A DNA stretch of 64,000 nt from Ophelia neglecta (lineage: Eukaryota). A program made the position numbers and the translations under genes. Of the stretch, positions 1 to 57,151 are shown piece after piece (within the stretch, counting starts at the first letter, position 1; each line of letters starts with the position of its first letter). The notes beneath the pieces were generated by a model. That model had not been told where the DNA came from. It saw only the letters and a program-made list of their open reading frames with translations, and ran no database searches. The stretch covers positions 76,942,001-77,006,000 of the forward strand of contig OZ260662.1 of the NCBI GenBank assembly GCA_965285935.1, in the 5' to 3' direction.

Positions 1-65
1 AACTGATTCATTTTTATTGGTCTAAGCAATAAATTGTGAGCAGTTCTCTTAATCATATTTTGCAG

Positions 66-3000
66 GCAAGTTTGTCTCTATGAGCATGTTGCCACAAGAC
101 TCAGTGCATTTGTTGCCTCAATACCGGCTAAATACTTCTCGCTTGTGGTAAGTGTCATTAGTAAATCTAATATTTTGAATATAAAATGTCAGTAATTACA
201 TTGTTATCTAATTGTTAAGGTTTGTTCTTCAGTAACAGAGTATACACTGTATACACTGGTCCACTGTGTCTTTGAAATGGTTCAGCTGTTTCTTGGTCCT
301 ATTAAGTAAGCCTTCCCTGTGTGTTAAGGACTTAAGGTGAAGGTGATAGACTTGATGATAGCTGATCATTGCTGGCTGTCACACCCTGGAGCTGCCCTCA
401 GTCCTAGCCTGTGTTCTTAGTCATTTGACCCTGACACTTGCTCAGACAGCTGGGAGTGTCCTCAGTGACATTGGGAGTGTATTTACATAGCAATTAGGTT
501 GAGCATATATTATGTGGCATTAAATGTATGTTTGTTTGTAAGGTTAATGCTTTAAGCTGCCTGAAGAGTGACATTGGCATTGGTTGACCAGGTAACCCCT
601 GTTTGAACTGAGAACCAGATCTGCTCTGGTGTACCTTTAATCAGGTCATGCAGAGTGTATTCGCATACACACTGCTACACCCATATATTGTTTTATAAAC
701 ACTGACCGGCTTGATTGTTGGACATTTTACTAGCCTCCATCCAGTCTTGCAGTTCTTTTCACCAGCATTTTTCGGTGAACCGTCTGCCACAGTTGTCGGA
801 TAACAAGCAACCAGAATATTGTACAGCTGTGCGAGTGTGCCACCATGTCTTCTGTGTACAGCAGTGCCTCTCCTCCAACAGATGGGACTGTCATGTCCTA
901 CGATTATCAAGGCTACCAAACCAGCTACCCCATGCAATATGCTGACTACTATTCCTGCATGGGTTATGGCTACTACGAGCCTGTGTCTTGTAAGAGTGAC
1001 CATATGTCCTCCTATATGGTGTCTCCCTTCCCAGTTAGTTCCCAGCAGAATGGACATTGTGTTCCCAGAATGATTAATTCATGTTTGTCCATTGGTAGTC
1101 CAGACTCTGGATACGATAGTCTTCAAAGATCTCGCACACCGTCACCTGTTATGGCACAGCCACCTTTATGTGCTCCCTATACTACTGACACTTACCACCA
1201 CTGTCCAGCCATTAAGCCTGAAGTAGTAACACAGGTTGCAAGCACACTATCTACCAACATATCACCTAGCAGTACGTTAATGGATCCCCCTAGCCTTATT
1301 GACAGGTATCAGAAGCCAGATGACTCTTACATTGCCATGGTGTCCATGGCGATCCTCAGCGCGCCCAGTGAGACTATGATACTGGCTAACATCTACAAAC
1401 ATATGCAGGAGAACTATCCGTATTTCAAAACAGCCAAGTGTTCCTGGCGTAACAGTGTACGTCACAATCTATCCACTCATGGTTGTTTTATCAAAACCCG
1501 TCGAGCCTGTAATGGTAAAGGCTTCTTCTGGGGCATCCATCCATCGTGCCTTGAGAGCTTCAGATGTGGTGACTTTGATCGTCGTTTGGCAAAACGTCGC
1601 GTTCAGCACAGCTTCAAGGGTCGCCGGGCCTCGCCAGTCATCACAGCCTCGCCCAGTGTGGATCCCAAGGGCGGACCCCAGTCTCCAGACTCCGGGTACT
1701 CCAGTCCACCCCACGATCACCAAGACCTTCGTGAAGAAGCTGATTATGTTGCCATGGAAACCACCCCTGTTACTAGATACCACTCCATTCTGGACAGACA
1801 GGTGATCAAACGCCCCACTAAGAAGCAGAGAACTGAACTCTACAATGCCTGTGCTCATCTTCTGGGATACTGCTAAATTTTCCAAACCATCATTAAAGTT
1901 TGGCGTTTAAAATTTGTGTAAAATCAACTTGTATATGGAGCTTGTTCAGCACCTTGCCTGAACACTGTCAGCTGTCAAAGAATTATTTTTCCGGAAATAT
2001 TTATTGGGCAATTTGCTGGACAGTTGTGATTACGACTACAGTTAATAAGTTCTGATTTATCGTTATAGATATTGCCATGTGATATAATTTGACCGACCAG
2101 TATTTGACATTTTATAAAGTGCTTACTAAATGTTGTTTTTATATTTAACATTTATATTTAAATTGAAGTGTGTTTACATTGTTTGTTATATTAAACTGTT
2201 GATGCATAAATGTTCTTTACTGTTTTGTTATCTGTTGATTAGTTTGATCTATCGTTGAAACTGTAATTTTCTTAACAACCATATGTTTACCAATCATCTT
2301 AGATGAGATATTATGCACAAAGGTCAGTGGCCTAGGGTCCCTTTTGGTAGAATCCAAACATTAACAAAGTTGATTTACATCAATTACAAACTTTGTCTTG
2401 GGCCCTAAACTTTCTTTTCACTTGCCTTTTAGACATCTGTATTGAGCTAAGTTTTGGGGTGATTTTATGTGTTTAATCTCTTTACAGCATAAATTCATCA
2501 CTTATATAATTGAATTTTGATAATAATATATGGTGGCTGGATTGAGAAATCAATATGCAGGAGTGTCACGCAAGTGTAGATATCCTACAAATGCCAGCCA
2601 GAATCACATCAGGAGCAGTCAGCCCCTGTAGCTAATGTGATAATTAAGGTGCTAGCTAACTAATGATATTTTGATCAACACATTTACAACTCTTCCTCTG
2701 ATTTTTAGGTATATTCTAGTAAATGTTTGACCCAAAAAATCCTGGTGAAGTTTGTCGCCAGCATATCAGAGTTCATGTTTACAGTTCACTGATAACCAAC
2801 AGTTACTGTTCTGACAAATAAGATGAAGAACAAAAATCTACCCCTCAAATACTCCAAATAGGCCATTTTCTTTGAAAAAAGGGTGGGAAAGGTTTTTATG
2901 GGGACCCAGGATGAACAGCTCCTAATAACACATATAAGTGGCACCACCTGTAATTAAATTCTGGGTTCTGCTTCTTAATGTTTATTTATATTTCTTTTCT

Positions 3001-6000
3001 TCATGTGACAGGTTCCTGCTCATAAAAAGTAAACAAGATATCTACTGTGTAATAAAACAAGTACATTTATCTATATGTACATCTGTTAAGAAAATATCTG
3101 CAGAAAAGAATGACTGATTGGAATGTTTTGCTTTCTCCTTTAAGGAGGAAACTCTATTAGAGAATGTTTTGTCCAAAAATGAGTTGACTGCATGTACAGC
3201 AATAGATGTTTGGTGTTTTGCCGCTAGGTAAGTAGTAGCTGCAATAAATATAAGAAGTATAGATAATCCCTTTTTATCTCTGAAACATTCATTTCTTCCT
3301 CCTTTCAAAGCTAGCTTTGATTTCAGATATGGAACGGCAGACCTCTGCCGAGATCAGTGCCATTTCCTAACAAACCTCCTTATCACCAATGCCTTCTCCC
3401 CTTCCCCTGAGTGCTGCCATCTGGTGGTGCTCATCAAGAGATTATTTAAATTCTTAGCTCCACAGCACCAGGTAAGCTCAAGAAGCTCTTAAATACCTTT
3501 TTCTGATAGGCATTTTTATCCAGCTCTGCCTTTGTATAAAATATTAAGGGCGCCTTCTTATGTTGTCCTCCAGCAGTTATTTTTATGGCCGAACATAAAA
3601 ACAATCGATGGATACTTGCTAAGCTTTCCCTGTGCATATTAAATGAAAGTTTAGCCAAACACAAGGGCATATAACAGATTGCTTCCAGCCCTTCCTGATT
3701 GTGACAGCATGTCTTTAGCCCAATAGTCTTAAACTAGTCTATACTCACCCAATACCAAATCAATTTATTACTATCTTGTTCATTTCTTGTTTTTTAGAAT
3801 CCTGATGTATTCCTCATTTGTATAAAACATTAAAGTGAGAATCCAGCTATGAGTTTCAAGAACACAACAAAATTGCAGGTGCCATTGCATTTTCAGCTGC
3901 TGTAGTACATGACTCACCCTGTCCATCTTCAGGACTTTCACTATTTAATATGTTTATTCCACTACACTGAAAAATTTAATTATAGATTAATATTGTTAAC
4001 ACCAATGCCTGTAAAACCAAGGATTTTTTTAAAGCACCAATTTTCATAGTATTATTATTATTATTACATTTTATATTTCCTTTATATATTTATATACATG
4101 TATATTTATATGTTTGGTATGCATCTCTTCTGTTTCAGTCCTTTTGTATTTTTGTTCCTGTTGACATATATTGTCTGTTTACTTATTTTGTACTTATTTT
4201 ACATATTTATTAGTGCCTTGACAAAAATCAACAATTTGAATTGAATAATTATTTGTTTTCAGGAAGAGTTCCTACAATCCTTCCCTGTCTCATCCCATTT
4301 TGGCCTGTGGAGTTACATCAGCTTCGAGTTCCTGCCGTCCTCTCAGATGGAACCAGTTGTGGAGACCGTGCTAACACAAGCCTCAGCTATTATTCAGCAC
4401 TGGCTGAATACAACCCAGAACACTGCAAGTGATGCTCTTAAACTAGTAAGTGTACTAGAAAGATGATTTCCCTATGCTCTCTTCTTATCCCTGGGCCCAT
4501 TGCCCACTGCAAACATGTCCTCCTCAGGCAAAAAGCCTATGTCCATCCTATGTCTTCAGCCATGGTTGTCGTTTCCCAGAGAAGATCCCTTCTCCCCCCC
4601 CCCCCCCCCCCATTTATGGAGTTTTAATACACCACAGCCTCTCGTTATAAGCTTTGCATTAGCTTTTTACACAAGCTCAAATGCTGGGACTTAGCCCATG
4701 TGTGCTCATTGGCTTGATCTACTCTAATAGGGAATCCCATTGGTGGAAGTGGAATTCACTGGCATGATTATTTTCATTTTTACACATTTGCTTTTTTAAG
4801 TAACAAATTGATCCTCAGGTCATTAATAAAACACATGTACTAGATGCAGTCTATCACATAGCAAAATAGCAAATTGTCGATCCCAAAAGTAAATATTCCA
4901 TACTTTAAGGCTTTATTATGGTAATAATAGATAACTCTATTGCAAAGCATTGCCAGTTGAGTGCATTGTAAATAATAAGCAATTGTGTAATGTGTAGTTT
5001 GAAAACTTAATTGAGAGAATGGCTAGCTGTAATTTATAATAACTTGTAATTACCTGCTTATGTCTTTTACTGTATTTCAGAGTCAGGCATGTCTCTGCCT
5101 GAGATCTGTGTATTCTGCCTTGTTTAAGGCAAATGACACTGTTCCCTCATCACATCATCAGACAATCAAAGAAACCTGCACCAAGGTATTCCTGGCGGTC
5201 AGTGTAGAAGATGTCAGTAACTACACTGTCATGAGATTAATGGTGTCCAACTTGGTAGAAGTATTAGCATACATTGCTTTTGGCCAAGATGATGCTGAAA
5301 TATTGAAGGTCAGTATCTCTCAGTATCGCAAAGTATCGCAAAGTTCATTGGACCATGTTTACAATGGACCCAGTTGACCGACATCCAGTACTAGAAATAT
5401 TTAAATGTGTGTATTTTTTAATGTTTGCAGACATAAGTTAAAAGCATTTTACCAGCACCCGTGTTGATTGTAGTGTTCAACAATGAAGGAAGTTTTACGC
5501 TTTGTTGTGCAAGTATAGGTTCAGTGAGAAGTTATAGGACTCGAATTATATAATAATGTCACTTCAACAGGACTATATGCTATTTTAGGCAAATGAATGT
5601 AGTATTACTTTTTTCAGATATTGTCTCACTTGTCAATTCTCCTTTCTACAAGTGATACCATGAAGTTTGCCTCTTTGGTCTACCTTCAAGCCCTGGGGAG
5701 GAAAGTTTTTTCACCTTCTTTTGAGGTAGATATTTCAGTAGTGTAATTAAATGACAGTTTTACTAGGCTTTTGTCTTATTTTGTATCATTTATGTGAAAA
5801 TAGTATGGTGCGTCTGTTAAAAGTTTAAAATGAAAAGAGGTTTTTAAATGTTTTCAAGAAATATGTCTTATATTTAGGCCAAACTTAGTGTACAAATGCA
5901 CATATTTACCAATATTATTACCCTTAAATACTGCATGTGCAATGGCAAAAAACACTGGCTCTGAAAACACGCTTCAGTGGTTTAAATGAATCAGTGAATT

Positions 6001-7458
6001 TCAGCAAACCCAGATCCTCCAGCTGGTTCCTGTGATATTCAGCCAGTTGCTGTCAGATGATTCCCCTGCAGTCCACCAGAGGTCCTTGGAGGTGTTCTCC
6101 GTCTTTGCGGAGGAGACAACCCATGAGACTATGGTACCTGATAGCATTCAGTCAAATGACAGGGTTCAAGAGGCTGTGGTCACATATCTCAATCAGGTAC
6201 ATGGCTATACTACATGTGTAGTAACCTGCTATTTTTCTTATTGTATGTATAAGCAGTAACTCCATGTGTGAGGAGTAATCAACACTGTAAAGCAGGCTGA
6301 TATTAATTAGCCATGCTGATATGCAGGTGATGGTTATGTAGCTGATACTGTTTCAGCAGACGCATAGAACAATCAAGTTGTTTTCTGTATACCTGATACC
6401 ATAAATCATAGTTTATAAACGTGTCAGGTGCATTATCAACATCTAAACTTCTAGTGTAGTGATAATACTACTAGTTGACTTGCTTTTTCATGTATAATAT
6501 TGATTAGATAAAATCGTATACAGAATTCAACCTCTGGGGAATGAGTTTGAGGGTTTTTGCAGGATATTTCCCGACCCTCCAGGACTTGTGGGCATCTCCC
6601 TCTATCTACTGTTAAATACCAGCCCCACTCACAAAATTTTTGCCATTAACCCTCAGAAAACAAATTAATTTACCCAGTAGGCATTGATGATGCCAGTCTC
6701 AACCCTATAAATCTACTATGAATTTTGATATACTATAGTTATGTAAAAATTTCAATTAATTATTACATATCTATTTGAAGCTTGCAAACAATGGGTCATT
6801 AACAGCATGTGATCTGTCAGTCATCCAACAGCAGACTGATGAACTGCACAGCTACCATAAATCAAGCTCTGAGGACTTGTATACAGCTAGTGAATGGCCT
6901 TCAGGGAGTGCCCCAGCACGAACAGCAGACCAAGCGGTAGGCCCTTTACATGTTCACATACTTGTATAGATAAGTTTGTAGATCTCTTAGAAACAAAGAC
7001 TTAACAGTCAGTTTTGAGTGGTATATATGTACAGATATTTATGGAGAAACAAGCAGGCCTGTGCTTAAGTGCTTAAGGTTGGCGCTACATAATTTATTGC
7101 TGATCTTTGACATGCAGTATTATAATTTGGTTAATTTAACATGCCTTCCTCATCCATTAGTTTTTGTACCCTATTTTTGTCCTTGTGCCTTATTTGCTTT
7201 GAATGAAAATGCTGACATTTGCACTTTATTTAAACTATTTGAATTTTTATACACCAGGACAAAGCCCCTGCCAGCAAGAGAGCAAGACAGGAACCAGAAC
7301 CGCCTGCGGATTCTGATTTCAAGGAGGTTTTAAAAACTCTACAAAACTGTGTAGATTCACTGTGTAGCTGGAGAGCACAGCACCCCTTCCCTCAGTGGGT
7401 CACAGAGGACATTAAAAAGGTCCACCAGCAAATGGAAAATAGGCTCTATACCAGTTGA
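66..7458 (+). CDS. FIRRM: FIRRM / C1orf112 homolog, 3' portion (5' exons lie before the window)
   Basis: GT-AG exons in consistent phase: 66-147, 3145-3227, 3327-3471, 4263-4445, 5081-5308, 5618-5725, 6005-6196, 6781-6936, 7258-7458 (TGA). Spliced peptide includes LYEHVATRL, AIDVWCFAARYGTADLC, LIKRLFKFLAPQHQ, FAEETTHE and PASKRARQE, matching human C1orf112 motifs as I recall them (AMDAWCFLARYGTAELC, LLKRLFFFMAPPHQ, FAEGTNHE, PAAKRARQE). Confidence 0.9.
694..699 (+). promoter_or_regulatory. Candidate TATA box for the nested Fox gene
   Basis: TATAAA about 150 nt upstream of the Fox ATG; motif only. Confidence 0.4.
845..1876 (+). CDS. Intronless forkhead-box transcription factor, FoxQ2-like (343 aa), nested in a FIRRM intron
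   Basis: Forkhead domain KPDDSYIAMVSMAIL...SWRNSVRHNLS...NGKGFFWGIHPSCLESFRCGDFDRRLAKRRV. The W-x-IHP...GDF-x-RR tail is typical of FoxQ2. Perfect Kozak GCCACCATG; in-frame TGA upstream at 776-778. Confidence 0.9.
   Translation: MSSVYSSASPPTDGTVMSYDYQGYQTSYPMQYADYYSCMGYGYYEPVSCKSDHMSSYMVSPFPVSSQQNGHCVPRMINSCLSIGSPDSGYDSLQRSRTPSPVMAQPPLCAPYTTDTYHHCPAIKPEVVTQVASTLSTNISPSSTLMDPPSLIDRYQKPDDSYIAMVSMAILSAPSETMILANIYKHMQENYPYFKTAKCSWRNSVRHNLSTHGCFIKTRRACNGKGFFWGIHPSCLESFRCGDFDRRLAKRRVQHSFKGRRASPVITASPSVDPKGGPQSPDSGYSSPPHDHQDLREEADYVAMETTPVTRYHSILDRQVIKRPTKKQRTELYNACAHLLGYC
2190..2195 (+). terminator. Candidate poly(A) signal (ATTAAA) of the Fox gene
   Basis: ATTAAA followed by a GT-rich tract at ~2211-2236; I saw no AATAAA in the 400 nt after the stop. 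Confidence 0.45.
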
Positions 7459-7654
7459 TGATTCATTGGTTGGATTCCGTATCAAGTCTATCAGCAAACG
7501 GAGAGTTAACAATGACTATTAAATGAAGATCCCAAATTTTAAAGTAATATAATATCAATACACAAGTGTCACTTTTCTGACCATGATTACTGATATGTTA
7601 TGTAGTTTTAGTGTTTAAATATTCTTTGTATTGGACATTATATATACATTTGTA

Positions 7655-7660
7655 AATAAA
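7655..7660 (+). terminator. Candidate poly(A) signal of FIRRM
   Basis: AATAAA ~200 nt after the stop, followed by a T-rich tract; second AATAAA at 7699-7704. Confidence 0.5.
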
Positions 7661-9803
7661 TGAGAAGACATTTTATTTGTTATTTTTTTTATTTTGTTAA
7701 TAAATAATCAAATATATGCTCATCTTCATAAATAATTTTACTGTGCTAGAACAAGTATGCATGGTAGTAAAATACAACTAAAACATTACATCAGGTAGAA
7801 GCCTTGTTAGTAACAATCGAGGAAACAGTGTCATATAACACAGTGTTAGACGCAGACGTGTTCAGTACATTTAATACCATTGTAATTTCCTACACCTGTA
7901 CAGGCTGAGACAGCAGATTTCTGTACATACACCTTCATAACACACATTTAAAAACTTGGGGAGATTCATTCACAAATGAAAGCTACAAAAGAACTTCCAT
8001 TTTCACAATCAAACAACTAATATTTGGAACAGGAGTAAATATGTGTTCAATGAAATAAAAATGGATCTAATTTTGAACCAAATGATTTTTTTTCAAGATT
8101 CTCCAGATTAAGTTAAATTTATGCAAAATGAGGGAAACTCAAAGCAGTTAAAACAAACAAAAAAACATTAAAAGTCTAGTTCAGATAAATACAATGGATT
8201 AGTATCAAATACAAAGCATAGCAATGCTAGTGGAACTACAATAAATAAACATTAATTAATAATACAGGGATGGCAGTGAGATGACTACAGTACTATGGCC
8301 TTGCGGACGACATCTTTCATTGAAAAAGCAAAATCAGCTTCTGATGAAACCATTTGGAATCACTTTCTCTTTTTAAACAAATCCTTTTAAATTGCACCAA
8401 GGAAAGAAAAAATGACTAACTTAAACAGTACTTTTATGTCCACCTTTGCTGCAATTAATATGGCCTTCAGGTGAAAGAAAAGAAACATCCTCACATAAGC
8501 ATTTTTATCCAAACAATTAAAATCCCTACTGACTAGCAATGATTAGTGTTTATTTGCAATGTGAGAACAAAAGTGAAATTAATACTAGAATTTTAACTGA
8601 TTTTCCAAGTGTCAAGCTAATGAACAATAACCAGTTAGTTTGCTGCGATATACATATGCTAAATGTTACAGATGAGTAAAACTTCAGTCAGTGCCAACCA
8701 AGTTAGCAAGTGGTACAAAAGTTCAACTTGGTTGAGGCAGACAGTGACACAGTTTCCTTGGAGATCATTTAACTATTTGGTTTTTACACTAAATCAGCTT
8801 GTGACTTTGAGATATCCCTGTTGTACACTTTAAGTACATATACTTGTTCAGTGTGAGCTTTCCAGGGGGAGTGTAATCAGGGTCAGGCGGAAACAAACCC
8901 TCCAAATAACATAAACTGGTTAACAGCAGGTACTCCCCCCCCCCCCCCCTCCCCCTCGGTACCAGAGATCAGTCGTCTGCTAGTACTTAGTTCCTTAAGA
9001 CTTACTCTGCAGTAGTCCACATGCTGTCAATATATCACCAGATTTCAGCAAATGAATTGAAAATATGTTGATGCCCTTTTGCCTTATTTGGAATAGAGCT
9101 TGCATGTCAAGCTGCTGATTATAATAATGAAACAAATAAACCCAAATAGTAACTGTGTCTTACACATCTTACTTATTCTGGAATTAATAACGGTTAACTA
9201 ACACTAATACCTATGCATGTTAGTTATGACTAGAGAGCCCAGAGATTGGGAGATGTGTGTCACATGATACTGCTGGGTGATAAACATGTTAAAAGCTCAG
9301 GCAATAAGACATCAACAAAATGTCTGGAAATGTAGTTTGAAATTGGAATGGCTTTTTGCTTAGACTTAAGTACATATACATTGTGTTAATGTATGGTCGC
9401 AAATAATTGTTAAGAATATGGAATGCATTGTACAGTGTTGTTATCAATTAATTGGTAGTCCCAAACAGACGTACACTCACATTGGTACCAACAACTAAAC
9501 GACACTAGTTATTGGGTATACATCAGACGACACCTACAGCTATCGCCATAGAAACAAGGAGGGTTTCAATTATTCCAGGAATGTTAGAAGAGCTGTCTTT
9601 GGTTCAACAGCATTATAGTACAAAACCTTCAGGAGAAAGTTTCCCCTAATGAAATATCACCTGCTTATCTGGTCTGCAGTAACTTTGGGAGGAGTCTGCA
9701 AGTTATAGTCTAGTGAGTGGTGAACTCCAATAGGATATTTATATACACACATTTGAGAAATTGTATAGTTTGTGGCATCTAGAAAAGCGACACTGATGAG
9801 AGT

Positions 9804-20052
<10,249 letters not shown>

Positions 20053-25115: not shown

Positions 25116-28100
25116 CTAGAACTGTGCTTTGGGTAAAATACAATAGCCTTCATCAGCTTTAGTCTTCAGTTGCAGAATATGAATACCAGCATTAAAACTG
25201 GAAACTGCAAGACTGAAAGAAATAGACACTATTGCATATAAGATTATTGGGCAAAGATCAGTATGCATGTTGATATATGTAAATCACTATTCAATTATGC
25301 TGTTAAAGATTATAATAATGTCTATCATATGAATGTATATCATGAAGATGAGAATAGGATTTTCATTTATAGTATCTTCATCATTGTATCAATTTTTTGC
25401 ATGATGAATAATTTGATATATATTCCAAATATGTCAAAAGATAAAGAAATTTAAAACAATAAATGTAAACCAATATTACCTCCCATCAGTGTATGGCCCA
25501 AGGGATGACAAGGGCCCTGACCCAGGAATGTCATAGCAGGCTATACACTCTGAATAGAATAACATTGAAAAATGTAAAATACACATGGGTGCAGGGATTA
25601 TATATTAACTAGGAAACTGTGACTGTTGTAATTCTTTTTAGTTTCACCTATAATAAAGGCATTTGACAAACACTTGTGATTACATACTTTAAAAAAATAT
25701 AATTTTAAAACATATATTTACCTTTGGTGTCACGATCCCACAGCCGTACACTGCAGTCATTGGAGCTGGTCACAACTAGATTACGATTACCACTGACACT
25801 GGAGGGGATGAACGCACATGCTCCAACTGACTCGTAATGACCCTTGAATTCATGGACAATTGAAGAATTTCTCACATCCCACAGCTAAAAGTATAATCCA
25901 AAAGTTTTAGCTGCTCGAGAGTTTAAAAATACTATTATCATACATACCCTTGCATAACCTTTTTTTTTTTTTTTTTTTTAAGGAATCAAAAGTACTATTC
26001 CTGGGTGAATTCTTTTCTTTAACAGATTTACAGTACTCAACATAAATTTGGTACAAATATATTTGAACAGTGAAATCATTCCATTCAGTAAAAGAGAGGT
26101 CAAAGGCATTTAATAGCCTAGACTTGATTATCATTTTGCTCGTTTGATTACACAATATAAGGCAGCATTCCTATTTCTTGTTTGGCTTCTGCCTTTGACT
26201 TGTTTCTCTTTTCCTACATACCGTAGCCTCACATCCTTGTCCCCCGAAGCCATTACTACAGGACAGAATATAGTTGTGGTCTTCACTGATGTCACAGCAA
26301 GTCTGGATGTATTGTTTCTTGGGAAATGTCTTGGTTACTTCTAATGTACGACCGTCCCACAACCTGAAAATGTATTCAGTCAATGACCAGCCCTACTAAT
26401 ACACTGTTTTGTTCTAGTACAGCTGTATAAATAGTGTGCTTGGCCAATTATAATAATTCATAGGTAAGGATGTGCTGGCTTATGTCTATGAAAATCTTGA
26501 AATAAAAATGTGTAATTAGAGAAGTAGATTTTACCGGACTTCCTTATCTTCCCCAGTCTGAGCAATGACATCTGTCCCAGCCGCCCATTTGACATGGGTA
26601 ATCTGTAAAACAAAATCCCAGCATTACTTCCATATGGGCATTCATTATCCAGACTTAAATATCTCTTATAAAAATGAACAAAATCTACTCTAACCAAGTT
26701 CCTGGAAATTGAGTTTTGGAGAACACACTGTCCAGTCTCAACGCTCCACAGCTTCATAAAATTGTCTCTGGATCCAGTGCAAAGCTGACTGTTTTCTGTC
26801 ATAATTAAAGAATACATCTTATATTAATTAAAATAGATTAAACACTAAGATCAGTTATCTAACAGGTCAAATTTAGCTAAAAAATGAAAGATGAAGAACA
26901 CAGCATTGTAATTTACCAGCATTAATGGTTAATCCGGTGACAACCATTTCATGACCCACAAAACTCAAGACAGGGTCAGAGATTCCAGACTGCCACATGT
27001 TAACATACTTGTCTCGCGAGGCACTCAAGTATGCATTGGCCTTAGCTGCATACAATACTTTAGTAACTTCCTTTTCATGGCCAGTCCATTTGCACAAGAC
27101 AGTTCCCTCTTTAAAATTATACAGCGCCACTGACTGCAAAAAATGATTCAATCATTAAATTTGTTTTAGAGTTACCAAGTACAATGCATAACTGTTAACC
27201 CAATTCCTCTTGGTTACCAGCAAAATCATAGTGAATCACTGATAGATATATTACAGCAGTTAATTTTAACTGATATATATAAACTTAAATTTCATCCCAA
27301 CTAGGGAAAATCCTTCCAAAATCTTTTTTCCTCTACAAACACTTGAAATTGAATAAAATAAGTGAAAAATTAAAATTTCACAATTTTGTTTTCCAATTTG
27401 GCACTGAAAAAATAGTCAAAGTCATATATAAAACAAAGCCATCAGAATCACAATAACATTGTGTCCTGACCCATACACTCCACACTACATTCAAAAGTAA
27501 ATCTTCACAAAAAATAGTATTTTTGGCATTTTGTCATTTTATTGCAACCAGACATATAGATAAAATGCATCTTTGCAATTCCGCACTATTACAGTTTGGG
27601 CATATGATAAGACTGAAAGGCTTATCAATATTGTTTCTTATCACAAGAATGTTTGCCAGACTCGTATGTAAGGGAGATATTGGCACATTCCTAGGGCACA
27701 GCCTCCTATGTGTTCTTTCATTGTGGTTTATGTAGACACCAGAAGTAAGATGGCGAGGTCAGTTGTCTGGCCATCATCATGACTTACAGTACATGCCAGT
27801 CTTTTTTCTTGACATTGAACAGCAAGATAGCTGATCATCTTAAACCACCCATGTGTCTAAGTAAGCATATGAGAAAGCATTGACTTTCAAGAGTTTGGTA
27901 CATCTGAAGGTCAGCATTTGCTTTCTGTGCCTATAGCACAAATTGGTCTGCCAATTCTAGGTCCTCTGAACATTTCATTAATCTACACACCCTGTCAGTG
28001 CAGGATTATAAATACATTAAGATTTGCACCAAGAACTAACCAGTTAATTTTAATGCTATATTACTTCCTCCCTGTCCATTTTAGCTCCACAGCATTGAAA

Positions 28101-30208: not shown

Positions 30209-33200
30209 ATGTCGGAAAAATCACCTCTACCGATGAAGCCATTAGTTTATAATGGCCCCCATGGGACAGATTCAGATGATAGTAAAGAAAAGGAGTAAGA
30301 AAACCAGATATTCTGCATTTAGTTAACTACCAACTGTATAATATATAGCAGATTAAGAAGCTAATTACATAAAGTTGTATATGCATGTTATGTATACATT
30401 TAAAACCATTTGGCATCTATGCACTTTTGGCAGAACTGTAGTATGATGCCACATGATTCTAGTAAGTGCAATGTACTCTAATTTATTTTCATGATATTAA
30501 TAGGACAGTGGAAATTTTATTGTTCACTGGATCCCAGATGAATTAGTATAGCCTCGTCAAAAAGCGTTCGGAGAGCAAACCAAATAAAAGTTGTACAGCG
30601 TAATAATTCTATTTGATCAATGTTCAATAGGCTTCAGGTAAGTTATTGTATTAATTGTAGAAAGATGACTAAGTTTAAACTATTTCGGAACTTTTTACTT
30701 TACAGACCACCAAGGATGGCTGACACAAGAAAAGCAATAGCATACAGCATATATGTGCTGATTTTGCTTTTAATAGCCTATCTGCTCAATCAGTTGGACA
30801 GGTATATGATCAGTATTTGTACTAAGCCAATGGCTCAGGATATTCATTATGGAGATCAAGCTTGCATGCAGAATAGCAGTCAAAGTTCTTCTGGAAGAAT
30901 AAATTGTACTTCGACAAATGAAATAAGGTAAGTTTGAAATTCTTGGAATGTGCTTTAGATTGAAACAGTGTTGAAAGTACTAGCAAATGATTGTAAGAGC
31001 CAGAAAAGAAGTTAATTTTGGCTGTACTTTTATGTTTTTGTCTGTTGCTAGTAAAAAGTTTGGCTGTTTGGTATTTAGGCATTGCTACAATTAATGAAGC
31101 AGCAAGGATTAACATTACATTAAAATCAAGAATTATTGTGACACGTGCATTTAATATGAACTAAGTTTATTCTACCAACATAGTGATGGCTGGGGTTTCA
31201 TTTTACCAAAGACTTTTTGCATAACCAAGTATGCTGTGGTTTTTCCAACATGAAAGATAAATCACACTGTCATTCTTTTTCTATTTATTGCTTTTCTGAC
31301 ATTCAAACAATCATATGCTGACCCTATTTTAGTGAACCAACTAAATAATACAAGTAGACACATTCATTTTAACAATAATCATTTGTTTCTTTACAGCTGC
31401 GTTCGCGAAACAGACAAACAAGGAACCCAACACGTTTGTGAATGGAATTACAATGGTCAGGGTATAGAGTATGAGTTACTGGCTGGCCCAGTCTTCATTG
31501 TAGTTTACACTATCGCCGGAATTCCTCTTGGTTTTTTGGCTGATGTGTACAACAGGAAAAATATGCTTGCTGGTCTTTTGACTTTTTGGTCATTGATGAC
31601 TGTTCTTACTGGACTTGCCAAAGAATACTGGCATTTAGCAATCCTAAGATTTGCATTAGGTATTGGCCAGGCTGGATGCACCCCTCTCGCTACTTCATTA
31701 ATCGCTGACTACTTTGATATTAGCTGGAGGGCGTCTGCCATTGGGGTATACAACTGGGGAATCTATTTTGGGTATAGCTTAGCTTATGCTGTAGGAAATT
31801 TTGTGACATCAGCTGATATTCTTGGTCAGGTTTGTGTATTTACACATATTTCATTTGAATAGTAACATCATATAACATCAGTTTGAAATCAGTATGTAAC
31901 TTTTTAAAGCATTGAATCAGATGTGTCAATTTTTTTAGCAAAAGGTATATTATTTGGAACTTGTGGATATAATACTACTAACAAATGTGGTTGTCATGTA
32001 TATTTATGGACTATATGGTTTTCCAGGGATGGCGATGGGCATTCTATGTAAGCGGTATCCCAGGTCTTATCATCGGACCACTCATGTTCTTCTCTGTTAA
32101 AGAGCCTGAACGTCAAGTAAAAAAGAATTCTAAGGACTCTGCTGACTTGGAGGGACTGCTTGGGCCTGATACTGAAGTCACTTGTTGTAAAAAGGCAGCA
32201 GTGGTATTTAAAACATTCCTCAGCCCCTCTTTGCTACTACTTTGTTTGGCAGGCTCACTCAGAAATGCTGGTAGGTGATTGGGAATTGCTTTGCATAATT
32301 AGCGGGTATAATGTTTCTATTACATCTATATGCTTTGTGTGAGGGTATACTAGTATTCTTCCTGAGCCTCTCTTTCAATTTCGCTCTAACACTGAGAACA
32401 TTCCATTCAACCTGCAATAGAGAGATGCTGGTTCAAGGATTAAAACAAAAACTTCTGAGATCAAAGCCCCCAAAACAATGTCTTAAAATCCCAATAGAAT
32501 TTATTAAGCTGGTATGTGCTTTATGTAGTGAAATACATGAACCTCTTATCTTCTTTGGTGTTTTATATGTTCACAGAATCCATGCTTTTCAATTATTTTA
32601 TACATGCATGGCTATTATGATTATTGCCAGAAAGTCTGATTTTGCATGTGTATAATCATTTTTACATGCATTAGGTCTAGTGGTGATAAATCTTATTATA
32701 TATTTTTGTATATATTCAATCAATTCCCTGGCATTGGCTGGCAAAATTCAGTTTAAGGCATAGTTGAAATTGTTAGATTTAATAAGGGATATGTCCATGC
32801 TTGGCACCTTTATCACTGATAATCAATGATGGGTGCAAGTGGAAACAAGAAAAAAACAAACAGTTTACCAATTTTCCTTGTGCTTTTTATAAAAGGAGTC
32901 CAGAAGATTGTAGATTACTTTGAAGTCAATATTCTTTTTATTTTTACTTGATCACATGTTTTGAAATGCATTTTTCAGCTGGCTATGTATGGGCCTACAA
33001 CACTCAGGTGTACTATGAAAGTATTCACCAGACTCCAGAAGAGATAGGAAAATATATGGCCTGGATTCCACTTGTTGGAGGCTCCATAGGGGTAGTGTTG
33101 GGCGGTTTCATCTCTGACAGAGTGGTCAAGAGGGTTGGTCCCTATGCCCGAATAGTTGTGATTGTAGTCAGCCAGGTATGTAACATGTATTTTTGGTCAA

Positions 33201-40427: not shown

Positions 40428-57151
<16,724 letters not shown>

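Follow-up and report, generated by a model that had tools for sequence, protein, structure and literature searches.

We identified a complete, intronless forkhead (Fox) gene that is nested in sense orientation in a single intron of the gene FIRRM (C1orf112) in a window of 64,000 nucleotides (nt) from Ophelia neglecta (assembly GCA_965285935.1, contig OZ260662.1, positions 76,942,001 to 77,006,000 of the forward strand; all positions below are those of this window unless stated otherwise). FIRRM is a partner of FIGNL1 that regulates RAD51 in recombination. A sequence-only reading of the window had proposed this arrangement, and it is borne out by colinearity of the flanking exons with the DUF4487 family, by canonical splice sites in phase, and by the same layout on a second contig (L001) from another species. 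In our judgement the gene is probably an independent, divergent forkhead gene of the FoxQ2 class in sense orientation within one FIRRM intron.

Host exons and the nested forkhead reading frame

DUF4487 corresponds to the C1orf112/FIRRM/FLIP family, whose hallmark is a WCF tripeptide (PMC8164572). A six-frame DUF4487 search of the whole 762-Mb assembly detected one locus, at which the matched profile positions follow each other in genomic order (91-221 upstream of the window, then 247-272, 275-301, 303-349, 349-406 and 536-582) and are colinear across at least 10 FIRRM exons. This evidence was collected exon by exon, with the peptides searched singly instead of as a joined protein model, and gave E values of 0.043, 7.5e-6 and 2.8e-4 for exons 66-147, 3145-3227 and 3327-3471, respectively. 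The family tripeptide is encoded at 3211-3219 (DVWCFAA; DVWCFIA in L001), and nothing unusual was seen in the host protein itself. The host features are as follows.

66-147 (+): FIRRM exon directly 5' of the host intron (..AKYFSLV), with the phase-0 donor GTG/gtaagt; DUF4487 positions 247-272
148-3144 (+): host intron of 2,997 nt, holding the entire Fox coding sequence; defined by the splice sites and the L001 counterpart
3145-3227 (+): FIRRM exon directly 3' of the host intron (EETLLENV..DVWCFAA); DUF4487 positions 275-301
3327-3471 (+): next FIRRM exon; DUF4487 positions 303-349, 74% identical to L001 12718-12867
4257-6199 (+): further FIRRM exons with approximate bounds (~4257-4451, 5084-5275, 5615-5734 and 6026-6199); DUF4487 positions 349-406 and 536-582

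All FIRRM splice sites flanking the Fox gene are canonical and in phase (..ttttgcag/GC..CTTGTG/gtaagt around exon 66-147, ..cctttaag/GAGGAA..GCTAG/gtaagt around exon 3145-3227, and ..tttcag/AT..CACCAG/gtaagc around exon 3327-3471), and the join from 147 to 3145 is in phase 0, as the sequence-only reading had predicted together with its colinearity to C1orf112. Since the profile passes from position 272 to position 275 across the intron, only two positions apart, no host exon is missing there. One sense-strand intron therefore contains the entire Fox coding sequence, between exons that are contiguous in the host protein, as in a nested gene. The host intron is by far the longest FIRRM intron in view, the others measuring about 100-790 nt in both species.

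The only long sense open reading frame (ORF) in this intron is the Fox ORF, which is intact, comprises 343 codons, and has a GC content of 0.49 compared with 0.36 in the remainder of the intron. It carries the following features.

839-847 (+): GCCACCATG, strong Kozak context around the start codon, read from the sequence; first ATG of the open frame
845-1876 (+): intronless Fox ORF of 343 amino acids (aa) plus stop, ATG to TAA; ORF listing and Pfam
1103-1120 (+): DSGYDS motif of the DSGxxS type, aa 87-92; regular-expression search
1310-1561 (+): Forkhead (winged-helix) DNA-binding domain, aa 156-239; Pfam PF00250, E 7.1e-28
1688-1705 (+): DSGYSS, second copy of the DSGxxS type; regular-expression search
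1751-1873 (+): conserved C-terminal tail (..TPVTRYH..KKQRTELYNACAHLLGYC), with columns invariant with the L001 protein and the closest paralog in the genome (C7)

The Forkhead match reached 97 bits, against a gathering cut-off of 27, and covered profile positions 1-87 of 88. The domain could be aligned end to end with the solved structures of FOXL2 and HNF-3 gamma, and it retains the recognition helix WRNSVRHNLS and the wing GKGFFW. Both elements are invariant across the three closest relatives, and the gene carries NSxRHNLS, with the base-contacting Asn, Arg and His, as well as the wing GKG-x-x-W, by which membership in the forkhead family was judged.

A word search with the Fox protein led, via the protein P0001, to L001, a 55-kb ENA contig. 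P0001 was 43% identical to the Fox protein over 260 aa up to the C-terminus and was the sole relative from the word search that matched beyond the domain. On L001, four FIRRM exons on the + strand (6831-7025, 7315-7488, 7799-7882 and 8640-8723) precede a Fox ORF at 10001-11227 (+), which is followed by FIRRM exons at 12238-15237 (+). Exon 8640-8723 is the ortholog of exon 66-147, with 68% identity, and the exons at about 4257-6199 matched L001 13641-15237 colinearly in tblastn. Moreover, the L001 donor (..FSLM/gtaagt) and acceptor (..ttgcag/GAAGAG) agree with those of the window in both codon position and phase, and the orthologous intron (8724-12237, 3,514 nt) is likewise the longest by far. 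A blastn comparison of the two introns with word size 7 produced alignments at the host exon edges and over the Fox coding sequence (62% over 563 nt), and nowhere else.

Averaged over tblastn pieces, FIRRM exon identity between the two species is about 52%, which is a crude measure. Human and zebrafish FIRRM share 42.8% identity over the full protein (PMC8164572), and set beside this value the figure suggests, again crudely, a deep split between the two species. HSP70 of the genome that holds the window shows 77-79% identity to bivalve, Owenia, chiton and gastropod proteins alike; by this measure the genome is probably lophotrochozoan and has no close relative among annotated species. The same arrangement in a second, distantly related invertebrate argues that the Fox gene is real and old.

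Further species were sought from both sides of the pair. A length-filtered word search with the frames of exon 3327-3471 from both species, which excluded full-length FIRRM proteins, returned the L001 ORF only. In an exhaustive profile search with the forkhead domain and the tail, P0001 alone spanned the whole profile (355 bits); six weaker relatives (P0249, P0256, P0264, P0274, P0285 and P0356) shared parts of the tail and lie on contigs of 1.3-6 kb. On three of the short contigs (L048, L050 and L051), neither tblastn nor Pfam analysis of 131 open frames detected a DUF4487 exon on the + strand, and L051 extends 4 kb downstream without a host exon. These short contigs neither extend nor limit the nesting.

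Beyond FIRRM the neighbours differ: L001 carries a DNMT1-like fragment and a histone cluster, and the window a WD-repeat exon, an MFS transporter exon and retroelements. In the window, the WD-repeat exon (26458-26814, -) is on the strand opposite to the MFS exon (31332-31862, +; MFS_1, E 8e-19), and an uninterrupted ORF of 1,800 aa at 50427-55829 (-) belongs to a BEL/Pao-type long terminal repeat retrotransposon (Pao peptidase A17, reverse transcriptase, integrase zinc domain, DUF1759 and DUF5641).

Expression signals and the relation to FIRRM

The signals that the sequence-only reading had named, a TATA-like box, a Kozak context and poly(A) candidates, are present. Together with a stretch complementary to the host donor, those outside the start codon are listed here.

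694-699 (+): TATAAA, candidate TATA box, 146 nt upstream of the ATG; pattern search
1180-1198 (+): 19 nt within the Fox ORF, 18 of them complementary to the host donor region 145-163; inverted-repeat match
1892, 2190 and 2953 (+): ATTAAA variants, candidate poly(A) signals; pattern search
3051-3056 (+): AATAAA, the sole canonical poly(A) signal in the intron 3' of the Fox stop; candidate from pattern search

Such short motifs (TATAAA, Kozak, ATTAAA, AATAAA) are no evidence alone. The Fox gene most likely has its own promoter, within the 700 nt that separate its ATG from the host donor, and its own poly(A) site ahead of the host acceptor; host splicing would remove the entire Fox unit. An independent promoter is the likelier source since a splice from host to Fox cannot yield a fusion protein: the frames differ, and translation in the host frame would end at a stop codon about 45 nt past the donor. 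Only one plausible acceptor, at 752, precedes the Fox ATG; it leads into a different frame, which closes after 16 codons. FIRRM and Fox have probably stayed paired because an intronic gene is difficult to separate from its host, rather than through a joint function.

Several points weigh against this interpretation. TATAAA at 694-699 is not conserved in L001, the 5' flanks of the two Fox genes did not align, and comparing them revealed no conserved promoter. Sequence and conservation are the only grounds on which the promoter, the poly(A) site and even the 147 to 3145 host junction are proposed; the three sequencing runs that contain the locus come from one sample and are all DNA-like, with even depth across the introns. 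Furthermore, conservation of the nesting is shown in two species only, and the distance between them is judged from their sequence divergence.

An alternative is that FIRRM and the Fox gene form a functional unit, in which Fox is produced from the FIRRM promoter or pre-mRNA, for instance through an alternative 3' end, or in which the two genes regulate each other by transcriptional interference or by competition between splicing and polyadenylation. The shared strand and intron in two deeply diverged species are in line with such coupling, as are the short distance of about 90 nt from the canonical AATAAA to the host acceptor and the 18/19 complementarity between host donor and Fox ORF. However, in a read-through or spliced transcript of the host the Fox ATG would follow the terminated FIRRM frame, making Fox a poorly translated second cistron, so that host-driven production of the protein is unlikely. 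Conserved nesting is, moreover, expected without any coupling, and sense-nested genes with promoters of their own are common. As for the complementarity, it exceeded all 1000 shuffles by match count, but the duplex energy of -27.1 kcal/mol lies within the shuffle range and L001 has no counterpart of the 19-mer; given the unexceptional energy and this absence, the match is probably due to chance. Altogether, we regard a functional unit as unlikely.

Still more doubtful, and offered as speculation, is the specific idea that the sense-strand pair constitutes a conserved regulatory unit in which FIRRM transcription or splicing gates Fox production, or the reverse, with the 19-nt stretch serving as a lineage-specific mask of the 5' splice site. 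If true, this would link a developmental regulator to cells that proliferate or belong to the germline. Any coupling at the RNA level would make the pair a tractable case of interplay between a host and a gene nested on its sense strand; otherwise it is an ordinary nested gene.

Selection, polymorphism and assembly of the locus

The Fox genes of the window and of L001 were compared by Nei-Gojobori counts of synonymous (pS) and non-synonymous (pN) differences, with the following results.

Forkhead domain: pS 0.67, pN 0.27
C-terminal tail: pS 0.77, pN 0.39
N-terminal half: pS 0.84, pN 0.54

Synonymous sites are saturated while the domain and the tail are held, which we take as signs of purifying selection; its absence, which the sequence-only reading had named as a possible objection, was not observed, pN in the domain being low beside the saturated pS. 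Mapping of the DNA runs, which covered 5,900 nt of the locus and informs on assembly and polymorphism, revealed three synonymous variants and one non-synonymous variant (S136P, outside the domain) in the Fox ORF; four variants are below a testable number, and their direction fits constraint.

Two heterozygous bubbles lie at the edges of the host intron, one at its 5' end (window -59 to 80; L019 1341-1480) and one at its 3' end (window 3041-3160; L019 4441-4560). One of them holds 11 single nucleotide polymorphisms (SNPs) and 2 indels in 140 nt and the other 4 SNPs and a 4-nt insertion; between the bubbles, the Fox ORF is almost free of variation.

The genome contains about 18 FoxQ2-like genes among 41-47 forkhead matches, and the N-terminal half of the Fox protein evolves very fast; both of these would suit an unexpressed or decaying duplicate from the FoxQ2-like expansion whose frame is open by happenstance. 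This explanation is nevertheless very improbable, since the frame is open in two species with saturated synonymous sites, the domain and the C-terminal motifs are conserved, polymorphism leans towards synonymous changes, and the remaining intron has no detectable similarity between the species. The complete coding sequence, the DNA-contacting helix, the subfamily motifs, and the open frame and intron position kept since the split of the two species argue instead that the nested Fox gene is a functional gene under purifying selection and no relic.

In each of the three runs, a single unitig spans positions 51-3070, covering the host exon, the 5' flank, the Fox ORF and the 3' flank, and overlapping unitigs extend it in both directions, the only breaks being the two heterozygous bubbles. 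Misassembly of the locus, against which the sequence-only reading had cautioned, is ruled out by these DNA unitigs. That the nesting is an artefact, with exon 66-147 taken from another gene or the locus misassembled, is hardly credible, as no supporting point was found and the colinearity of DUF4487 across the intron, the same exon order in the independent L001 assembly, and the spanning unitigs all speak against it.

Both non-coding flanks of the host intron are single-copy in the genome. No repeats were found in the host intron, no Rfam families in positions 1-8000 of the window, and no N stretches in the studied region. Upstream of the window, a depth spike with many loose ends in all three DNA runs (L019 395-591, window about -1005 to -809) marks a dispersed repeat in another FIRRM intron.

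Placement within the FoxQ2 class and comparison with known systems

The named matches of the Fox protein were almost all FoxQ2 (Latimeria, alligator and many fishes), at about 110-130 bits, with the best vertebrate FoxQ2 at about 129; among them were short bird and reptile proteins labelled 'L2-like' or 'D4-like' by NCBI. The best of the solved human FOX classes (L2, A, C, G and D) reached 73-78 bits, and no other scored higher. In the reverse search of the genome with Latimeria FoxQ2, a trio on C9 and a pair on C8 ranked at the top, followed by the C12 clusters and the window gene.

A phylogenetic tree was built on about 100 alignment columns and rooted on 8 other, unnamed Fox domains from the same genome. 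It joined the named FoxQ2 proteins (Latimeria, Alligator and Danio) with the window gene and the FoxQ2-like genes in a clade with 100/100 support that excludes those 8 domains, in agreement with the grouping for which the sequence-only reading had suggested a forkhead phylogeny as a check. Within this clade, the window gene falls into a divergent subclade (98/96) of 31 rows, which comprises the window gene, the C12 clusters and unnamed metagenomic proteins, with no named protein in the sample. The window gene, the L001 gene and the C7 paralog form a clade of their own (99/90), in which the branching order is unsettled and pairwise non-synonymous distances (dN) are about equal. A regular-expression search for the EH-i-like (Groucho-binding) motif identified FTIDYL in Latimeria and Danio FoxQ2 and none in the window, L001 and C7 proteins; many divergent FoxQ2 genes are without this motif (PMC12828049). 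The FoxQ2-like identity assigned by the sequence-only reading therefore stands with a qualification, given the divergent subclade and the absent EH-i-like motif: the label is fair but loose, and 'a FoxQ2 ortholog' would overstate the relationship.

The closest paralog of the nested gene (C7:19070018-19071061; L008 1018-2061) encodes 348 aa, is 50% identical to the window protein over domain and tail, and shares its MTCTPV and LLGY tail motifs; on the same strand, about 6 kb upstream, there is a BTB-BACK (Kelch-like) exon. At least 9 tandem intronless FoxQ2-like paralogs of about 350-460 aa occupy C12:45.19-45.28 Mb (L009-L015 and L018), and more copies are found at C12:50.66 and 50.77 Mb, at C9:28.62-28.63 Mb (three), and at C8:64.13 and 64.18 Mb. 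The nested gene probably arose by duplication within this large lineage-specific expansion.

Members of the subfamily share (D/E)SGxxS before the domain, KP/RP-x-D/E-SY at the domain edge, NLSTHGCF, GDFDRRLAK, M-T-x-TPV-T-x-YH and the terminal ..AC..LLGY. A direct repeat of 23 nt (1099-1121 and 1684-1706) encodes the two DSGYxS motifs of the window protein. The N-terminal one is conserved throughout the subfamily: DSGYDS corresponds to ESGYSS in the L001 protein and to ESGYVS in the C7 paralog, and DSGY is also present in P0274, P0285, P0356 and the C12 cluster. DSGxxS matches the beta-TrCP phosphodegron pattern, and a putative degron role is read off the motif alone. Weaker matches to the C-terminal tail were detected in P0256 and P0285.

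Like the FoxQ2 class, including the fast-evolving and often multi-copy spiralian FoxQ2 (Seudre et al. 2022, PMC9539403; FoxQ2I of PMC12828049), the window gene is intronless and encodes a clade-I forkhead domain, and like spiralian FoxQ2 it is part of a large lineage-specific expansion with tandem clusters. Unlike the named FoxQ2 proteins, it has KPDDSY in place of KPPYSY at the N-terminal domain edge, STHGCF after helix 3, and DSGxxS, MTxTPV and C-terminal LLGY motifs of its own. It marks an undescribed branch of the FoxQ2 expansion, and these motifs (DSGxxS, MTxTPV and the LLGY tail) define a subfamily so far present only in unannotated sequences. The FIRRM intron between DUF4487 positions 272 and 275 provides a fixed landmark, and hence a synteny anchor, for one branch of this fast-evolving expansion. 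In annotation, automatic pipelines are likely to miss the nested gene or to fuse it with its host.

Neither FIRRM, C1orf112 nor the nesting is mentioned in PMC9539403, PMC12828049 or their supplements, and a literature search for FIRRM together with forkhead returned nothing relevant. We found no earlier description of the FIRRM-Fox pair; the kind of arrangement is already known, and the pair is ordinary unless the two genes are coupled. Nested genes are common, and those in sense orientation, a minority in published surveys, are no rarity. Conserved host-nested pairs include MAB21L1 and MAB21L2 in introns of NBEA and LRBA, as well as F8B and F8A in intron 22 of F8. Unlike in those pairs, the gene nested in FIRRM is on the sense strand of its host, and its conservation is known from two species only. 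Like MAB21L1/2 in NBEA/LRBA and F8A/F8B in F8, however, it is a complete gene within one intron of an unrelated host, kept there across a deep divergence.

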